Shown here one piece after another: positions 30,779 through 31,133 of a stretch of 64,000 nt of DNA. Made by a program: the position numbers and the translations under genes. The stretch's first letter is position 1; each line of letters starts with the position of its first letter. The notes beneath the pieces were generated by a model. That model saw only the letters and a program-made list of their open reading frames with translations. It made no database searches and had not been told where the DNA came from. Origin of the DNA: Mobula hypostoma (taxonomy: Eukaryota); assembly GCF_963921235.1 (NCBI RefSeq), contig NC_086108.1, positions 51,956,001-52,020,000 on the forward strand. The letters run 5' to 3'.

Positions 30779-31133
30779 TAGCTGCTGTTTGATTTTCTCC
30801 AAACTGAAGCACTTAGCCTGGGCTGCCTCTGCAGCCTCTTCAGCCTCCTGCAGTCGAGATGTCAGCTTCTTCTCCGACTCCTCCAACTCTCGCCCCAGTC
30901 TCAACAGATCTGACCCACGCTTCTTGTCCATCTCCATCTGGGACGTAATTACACCACCAGCTTCTTCCAATCTGTTCTGGATCGATTTCTTGAGTTTCTG
31001 CTGATCCTTTCGAAGGTTAGTCAGTCATTGTTTCGTCTCTCTGAATTAATTCATCAGTTCATGACCGCAGTTTTGGCTCGGAATTCTGTTTCTCCATCTC
31101 CACTTTGACGAGTGTGAACTCCAAGTCTTCAGT
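30779..31133 (-). pseudogene. Captured, intronless sarcomeric myosin heavy chain rod fragments (three segments)
   Basis: [50 protein letters not shown] | [33 protein letters not shown] | [33 protein letters not shown]. These match the class II MYH motifs DDLELTLAKVEKEK, RLEEAGGATS..MNKKRE and KKKLAQRLQ.AEE....NAKCSSLEKTK. Confidence 0.9.

Follow-up and report, generated by a model that had tools for sequence, protein, structure and literature searches.

The minus strand of a 64,000-nucleotide stretch of the Mobula hypostoma genome (the window; RefSeq assembly GCF_963921235.1, contig NC_086108.1, positions 51,956,001 to 52,020,000) carries at 29589-33494 what is very probably a decayed copy of a high-copy, non-autonomous Ty3/Gypsy-type long terminal repeat (LTR) retrotransposon family of stingrays (Myliobatiformes). 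Behind a truncated reverse transcriptase (RT), this copy holds intron-free fragments of the rod of a sarcomeric myosin heavy chain. The RT-myosin chimera had been noticed in a preliminary description of the same DNA, which took it for host mRNA captured by template switching; our analysis confirmed the observation and supports the interpretation, with the refinements given below.

Myosin rod sequence in the reading frame of the element

An open reading frame (ORF) at 31059-31529 of the minus strand runs from RT through AYVDD...DVRRVLEPG into myosin-like sequence and meets no stop until a TGA, as had been described. A second frame, one base out (31009-30539, minus strand), carries myosin segments 2 and 3 and runs on to the stop at 30539-30541; in the window copy these two segments are in a different frame from segment 1. 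The segments are as follows.

30965-31142, minus strand: myosin segment 1, about residues 955-1007 of MYH7, mapped through the relative P0007 at locus L001
30875-30964, minus strand: myosin segment 2, about MYH7 1148-1181, a phmmer domain against MYH7 1144-1181
30764-30874, minus strand: myosin segment 3, about MYH7 1388-1425, by phmmer against an MYH7 fragment (1361-1425), E 2e-9

In a phmmer search of the PDB, the translation of 30776-31009 (minus strand) matched MYH7 1144-1181 and 1385-1421 at E values of 2e-9 to 1.9e-8; the fragment MYH7 1361-1425 was found at 2e-9, and full-length MYH7 and Myosin-4 at about 1e-8. The top matches were all sarcomeric class II myosins, and generic coiled coils appeared only at E>0.6. 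Similarity to the rods of MYH7 and Myosin-4 was found at three colinear places, at E 2e-9 to 3e-10, and the intact relative P0007 is colinear with MYH7 925-1007, 1133-1181 and 1350-1421. The phmmer matches and the P0007 alignment agree with the residues first proposed for the three segments (about 955-1005, 1148-1181 and 1388-1421 of MYH7-type myosins). The myosin part extends a little past the 30779 first given, to about 30764, where LPIVGM matches LQNEIEDLM and the relative P0013 keeps LPIEDLM. Compared with a sarcomeric myosin heavy chain, the family shows colinear rod similarity over about 928-1425, whereas the element copy has rod fragments only, without motor domain, neck or complete rod, and these are embedded in the ORF of the element. 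When folded as a single sequence with AlphaFold, the relative P0001 had a mean pLDDT of 40.9, and its myosin part was the only one predicted to be helical, with moderate confidence.

Structure of the element

The remaining features of the element, in its own orientation, are as follows.

32814-33494, minus strand: 5' LTR of 681 bp, TGTAAGGGG...CTACA, a direct repeat of 29589-30263, ends read from the sequence
32794-32811, minus strand: site TGGGGGCTTTGTCTGAGA resembling a primer binding site (PBS), two bases (TT) after the 5' LTR, read from the sequence
32000-32713, minus strand: gag remnant split over several frames, found by six-frame translation, with a PNMA-like capsid part at 32000-32374
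31665-32159, minus strand: retroviral-type aspartyl protease remnant (ILDTGAQ), Pfam RVP E 6e-4
31143-31529, minus strand: RT remnant (fingers and palm) ending at AYVDD, with a sub-threshold match to Pfam RVT_1 (E 2e-4)
30277-30763, minus strand: tail between the myosin part and the polypurine tract (PPT), ORF open to the stop at 30539-30541
30264-30276, minus strand: PPT GGTGGGGGGAGAG, abutting the 3' LTR, read from the sequence; the same motif occurs in L001
29589-30263, minus strand: 3' LTR, its outer end without the last ~9 bases (GGGGCTACA)

The direct repeats at 29589-30263 and 32823-33494 are 89.7% identical, both LTRs start with TGTAAGGGG (TGTAAGG) in element orientation, and the 5' LTR ends in CTACA. 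Summed read depth was very high within the LTR and fell off outside it. The copy L001 has TGGGGGCCATCGTCCGGG at the position equivalent to the PBS-like site of the window; we take this site to resemble a PBS for tRNA-Pro.

The order of PNMA gag, RVP protease and RVT_1 RT is that of Ty3/Gypsy elements, with marginal Pfam matches throughout. The gag piece scored 23.1 bits against PNMA (E 5.4e-5), just under the 25-bit cut-off, and the protease 20.5 bits against RVP (cut-off 20.7); scores slightly below curated cut-offs are expected of a decayed copy. The Ty3/Gypsy assignment holds because the better-preserved RT of a Hypanus relative, P0012, has its best PDB matches in Ty3 RT (4OL8, E 9e-14) and Ty3 Gag-Pol (7Q5B), while the same search returned no retroviral RT at E<=1. 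In an alignment, SGCCQ stands in the window RT (about 31400) and in the relatives P0001, P0012, P0164 and P0166 of Mobula and Hypanus where Ty3 RT has SGYHQ. The motif is common to copies of both genera, indicating that this conserved site of the RT had changed before the subfamilies diverged.

Neither six-frame translation nor Pfam found an RT thumb, RNase H or integrase between AYVDD and the PPT, in line with the absence of these parts noted earlier; only myosin-derived sequence and an unrecognised tail lie there. Since RNase H and integrase are missing downstream of RT, the element is a non-autonomous derivative, and the proposed architecture of gag, protease, partial RT and myosin holds. 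The window copy has further frameshifts of its own in gag-protease and lacks 154 bp near 31750, in the protease region, when compared with L001.

Downstream of the myosin part, some 225 coding bases are conserved between copies (P0001-P0004, P0167), and several copies have them in frame. The preliminary description had the last myosin segment running in frame toward a C-terminal pol region. The frame is indeed open to 30539, but the pol identity is unproven, as the tail matches nothing: it had no Pfam family match, no tail-only relative in a HMMER search of 1.84 billion representative proteins, no recognition in Atlas and no similarity to myosins by BLASTP. With all four blank, the tail could not be assigned to the C-terminus of pol. 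The tail may be the 3' end of a helper-type element.

A multicopy family in rays

Logan contigs from four DNA runs, labelled as four different organisms, were compared with 29500-33600 of the window, and each run gave 12,000-21,000 matching contigs. Summed depth over the myosin part was of the same order as over gag-RT; as summed depth is not a copy number, we claim only "many" copies. Variable sites inside the myosin part were each covered by 19-65 distinct contigs. Contigs bridged both the RT-myosin junction at about 31140 (e.g. 30988-31187) and the myosin-tail junction at about 30779 (e.g. 30637-30900). The RNA data recommended for checking gave the same picture, as RNA-labelled runs of two organisms contained contigs across both junctions, with DNA carry-over possible.

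A HMMER search of the representative proteins with 30542-31009 (minus strand) as query ranked 13 chimeric relatives, all at E<1e-10, above every true myosin. RefSeq holds chimeric proteins from Mobula hypostoma, M. birostris, Hypanus sabinus and Hemitrygon akajei, encoded on different chromosomes; the lineages of Mobula and Hypanus belong to the Myliobatiformes. In several species, ORFs of 297-432 aa span RT, myosin and tail. The copy L001 has its own LTR pair, 87% identical. A mixed alignment of the chimeric proteins was too mosaic to serve as a profile. The earlier suggestion that the chimera might be multicopy is thus borne out by bridging contigs in four organisms and by proteins in four species.

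These data also dispose of the idea of a one-off processed myosin pseudogene or local rearrangement inside one LTR element at a single locus: the 64-kb window does hold a single copy, but the same junctions recur in thousands of contigs from several organisms and in proteins of four species, and L001 has LTRs of its own, so that a single event at one locus is refuted.

Two lesions show the decay of the window copy and the history of its lineage. The TGA at 31059-31061, in segment 1, is absent from all other contigs matching there. In contrast to this private stop, a 4-nt tandem duplication near 31020, also in segment 1, is common among copies (16-43% of the DNA-run depth lacks it), indicating that the frameshifted lineage went on multiplying.

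The RefSeq names of the chimeric proteins vary: "putative uncharacterized protein MYH16", "myosin-16-like", "myosin heavy chain, skeletal/striated/cardiac-like" and "uncharacterized", so that some copies are labelled as MYH16 and others as skeletal or cardiac myosin. This has a practical side, as models in at least four species call copies of a retrotransposon "MYH16", "myosin-16-like" or "myosin heavy chain-like", and one SDHAF3 isoform ends in element sequence. That isoform, P0004 of Hypanus sabinus (RefSeq "succinate dehydrogenase assembly factor 3 isoform X1"), joins the SDHAF3 N-terminus to element myosin segments 2-3 and the tail; an element copy was read as the terminal exon, which is either real exonisation or an annotation artefact.

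One long insert and later deletions

The preliminary description distinguished three myosin segments. Longer relatives do not support separate captures; they show one insert, of which the segments are deletion remnants. In P0007 and P0167 the myosin part begins at about MYH7 928 (TAELNAQKCRLE...), after a longer RT that reaches the thumb, and P0148, P0008, P0003, P0009 and P0164 hold about MYH7 965-1113 ahead of segment 2. On these alignments, the three window segments appear to be what in-frame deletions left of a single larger insert that spanned about MYH7 928-1425; the window copy has lost about 60% of the captured rod stretch.

Compared with L001, the window copy lacks 138 bp (46 codons) at about 31140. 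The RT-myosin junction of the window is therefore an in-frame, secondary deletion and not the original capture junction; the same junction is common to P0001 and the bridging contigs. At about 30963/30964 other copies run on into LQVGEDQGSV, as the long forms do (seen at contig ends and in P0148 and P0008), which identifies NRLE|EAGG as a second deletion junction. The window copy belongs to a subfamily with two in-frame deletions. The jump from about 1181 to about 1388, where ...ELEE(S/A) is joined to (LEEA)KKKL, would fit slippage between similar heptads.

Donor gene and route of capture

The insert is 26-34% identical over long stretches to MYH7, MYH7B, MYH4 and MYH6. A gene of Narcine bancroftii (Torpediniformes), P0173 and its isoforms, which RefSeq names "MYH16" or "myosin-6-like", is closer, with 46-70% identity against 26-32% for those paralogues. 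It is thus nearer to the Narcine gene by about 20-40 identity points, in comparison with a panel without a verified MYH16: a search from a lungfish MYH had yielded MYH7B, MYH7 and MYH4 orthologues almost exclusively, and neither an MYH16 nor a ray sequence was among them. As far as tested, the nearest real myosin is the Narcine gene, in keeping with the tentative MYH16-like assignment of the preliminary description, and the comparison supports an MYH16-like sarcomeric myosin as the probable donor.

The Narcine gene occupies 173 kb, has six isoforms (P0171-P0176, models of 205-254 aa), starts in the myosin neck (neck and start of S2, not in the element) and runs on through about MYH7 1113-1140, rod residues missing from the element. 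For these reasons it looks like a real myosin gene rather than an element copy. The model comprises a neck and partial rod but no motor domain, pointing to an MYH16-type gene that is decaying, or poorly annotated, in Torpediniformes.

Intron positions speak for a spliced donor. Differences among the Narcine isoforms place exon borders at about MYH7 969, 1003, 1032 and 1121, and a sarcomeric MYH gene of Gymnothorax (L002) has introns at about 975, 1034, 1082, 1121 and beyond; genes of the donor type therefore do have introns near the positions in question. Both the window (31075-31090; about 30975) and L001 have continuous coding DNA at about MYH7 969-975 and 1003, which upholds the claim that segment 1 crosses a conserved intron position without an intron. 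In the Hypanus copy P0166, which covers about 1005-1113, a 268-aa product lies on exactly 807 bp in a single exon, so that about 1032 and about 1082 are uninterrupted as well. These uninterrupted positions support capture from spliced mRNA.

Three other origins of the myosin sequence were weighed. Capture at the DNA level, by recombination with genomic exons, is improbable. Nothing specific speaks for it, except that segment 3 starts close to an intron position (about MYH7 1388), and it is opposed by the two to four intron positions, at least, that are uninterrupted inside the insert and by the sense orientation of the insert within the element ORF. A reverse transfer, in which the Narcine "MYH16-like" gene model was itself built from element copies, is just as hard to sustain. 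The model is short (254 aa) for its 173 kb and has no motor domain, as such an artefact might; however, its N-terminal exons match the neck and start of S2, which the element does not carry, it covers the stretch around MYH7 1113-1140 missing from the element, and its isoform borders coincide with introns of another MYH gene. Even less probable is a generic or element-borne coiled coil that is myosin-like by composition. Pfam Myosin_tail_1 found no match at threshold on the window's myosin pieces, and identity to MYH7-type rods is just ~30% over long stretches. Against this, the best matches are exclusively class II myosins, colinear at three places, with tropomyosin and GCN4-type coiled coils at E>0.6, and the identity of 46-70% is to a Narcine gene that also has a neck region. 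The assignment to class II MYH in the preliminary description stands on the PDB matches.

Proposed mechanism

LTR-mediated transduction by template switching is, in our judgement, the best account and a very probable one. We infer that, in an ancestor of the family, RT at work on element RNA jumped to a spliced MYH16-like sarcomeric myosin mRNA packaged with it, copied about 500 rod codons (about MYH7 928-1425) and then switched back inside the RT thumb. The product would have retained the LTRs, PBS, gag, protease and PPT along with a crippled RT, but not RNase H or integrase. Because these two are lost, later copies would have depended on the enzymes of a related autonomous element, mobilising the chimera in trans. 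It would then have multiplied and split into subfamilies through internal deletions, which preserve the frame in the forms examined. The window copy would have inserted with identical LTRs and later gained its stop codon and further frameshifts, and the myosin part would be a helical passenger.

Several points weigh against this account. No autonomous partner has been identified, and the Pfam matches of gag, protease and RT all fall just short of curated cut-offs. The MYH16 label comes from names that RefSeq assigned automatically and from a fragment of one Narcine gene rather than from a tree. The donor comparison uses Narcine and not the element's own species. DNA-level evidence for the colinearity of the long forms consists of one 30-nt junction and gene-range arithmetic for one Hypanus copy. 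Finally, the insertion of the window copy left no normal target-site duplication and the 3' LTR is clipped, as described under the insertion site.

A possible role for the coiled coil

Within the transduction account, the myosin coiled coil could be more than a passenger. It might be a working oligomerisation module, kept by selection in master copies, through which the defective Gag-Pro-RT' fusion or its RNA would more readily enter helper particles; we consider this unlikely. It would fit the in-frame subfamily deletions in the RT-myosin region (138 bp; the NRLE|EAGG junction) and the ORFs of 297-432 aa that several species have across RT, myosin and tail. Prediction still makes the myosin part helical, and Ka/Ks between the window copy and L001 is 0.57 in the myosin part and 1.18 in the RT remnant. 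However, with 28 and 31 changes the two Ka/Ks values do not differ significantly, and dead copies such as these have diverged mostly since they inserted. A large share of contigs has the 4-nt duplication that shifts the frame between segments 1 and 2, so that a lineage with a broken ORF multiplied, and the annotated ORFs are a selected sample, the longest ones.

Somewhat less likely still is the bolder suggestion that the captured rod is the reason for the success of the family. A dimerising coiled coil on Gag-Pro-RT' would then co-assemble with helper particles and outcompete them, and transcripts or small RNAs might perhaps affect the host's MYH16-type jaw-muscle myosin.

Comparison with known systems

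LTR retrotransposons of plants are well known to capture host coding sequence, and retroviral oncogenes are a second well-documented case. In acutely transforming defective retroviruses, cell cDNA replaces pol, is fused in frame to the upstream viral coding sequence, and the virus depends on a helper. The ray family differs from such gag-onc viruses in being a germline-amplified retrotransposon and not an infectious virus, and there is no evidence of an effect of the myosin piece on the host cell.

In animals, LTR-mediated retroposition places intron-free sequence derived from host mRNA between discontinuous parts of an LTR element, which has been attributed to template switching; the products are often in frame and co-transcribed (Tan et al. 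2016, PMC5131818). The ray element resembles these cases, as intron-free, host-derived sequence is flanked by an RT remnant on one side and by the tail, PPT and LTR on the other, within one LTR pair. The retrocopies of that study were described as young and often polymorphic, and family-scale amplification was not reported (Tan et al. 2016, PMC5131818). In contrast, the ray chimera gave rise to a family that transposed and is found in very many copies across one order of rays.

Crocodilian endogenous retroviruses captured KIT-ligand and nectin3 (Chong et al. 2014, PMC4299795). The nectin3 capture cost the element a gene, predates speciation and is present in six insertions, and the near-complete host ORFs are under purifying selection (PMC4299795). 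Both systems are vertebrate LTR retroelements that carry captured host mRNA; unlike the crocodilian elements, the ray family is of the Ty3/Gypsy type, holds a heavily deleted rod fragment and reached a far higher copy number. Maize Bs1 is a non-autonomous LTR retroelement in which transduced host gene fragments from three different donor genes form a hybrid ORF (Jin and Bennetzen 1994; Elrouby and Bureau 2001, 2010; reviewed in PMC13317346). The ray element likewise has a hybrid ORF from a transduced host fragment in a non-autonomous LTR element, whereas Bs1 is a plant element with three donors.

We found no report in the literature of a myosin-carrying retrotransposon in rays or any vertebrate. 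The kind of event is known, as LTR-mediated transduction, while the lineage, the donor and the scale are new. The animal cases compared here involve few copies; in manta, devil and whiptail stingrays, a rod fragment reached very high copy number. Its deletion derivatives form a natural series that may reveal the cis requirements of a non-autonomous LTR element and whether a coiled coil of foreign origin can be of use to such an element. The family also provides a dated marker, both for the phylogeny of rays and for how MYH16-type myosin evolved in cartilaginous fish.

Insertion site and age of the window copy

One further feature lies beside the element.

28107-29587: flank repeat X+Y, about 577 bp, split by a 903-bp insertion at 28418-29320; outside the family

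X+Y is duplicated at 33494-34065, on the opposite side of the element. The two copies are 89-90% identical, a divergence equal to that of the LTRs, and X+Y has a read depth 10-100 times below that of the LTR. A short target-site duplication of 4-6 bp was not found at the ends of the element, where the flanks differ (AAGTC and TGGAG). Without a normal target-site duplication and with a clipped 3' LTR, the window copy's own insertion was not a textbook integrase event. In this non-canonical insertion, 577 bp of target seem to have been duplicated, for example by two uncoupled end joinings or by break repair.

The window copy would have inserted with identical LTRs, and the present LTR divergence of about 0.11 suggests an age of tens of millions of years. 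This estimate assumes usual vertebrate rates, and the copy would be older if rates in rays are slower.

The 903-bp insertion at 28418-29320 has an 8-bp direct repeat at its ends (ATGTACCT / ATGTACCG) and starts with CAGTGGTCCCC; part of it recurs inverted at 60241-60444. Its ORFs (...LPFPKYLCEADFSAMNATKTKLRNRLD...) read like what we take to be the C-terminal remnant of a hAT transposase. Elsewhere in the window, at 25665-26126, a (GT/CA)n and GTCT-type microsatellite yields spurious ORFs (MEVCVCVCVC...).
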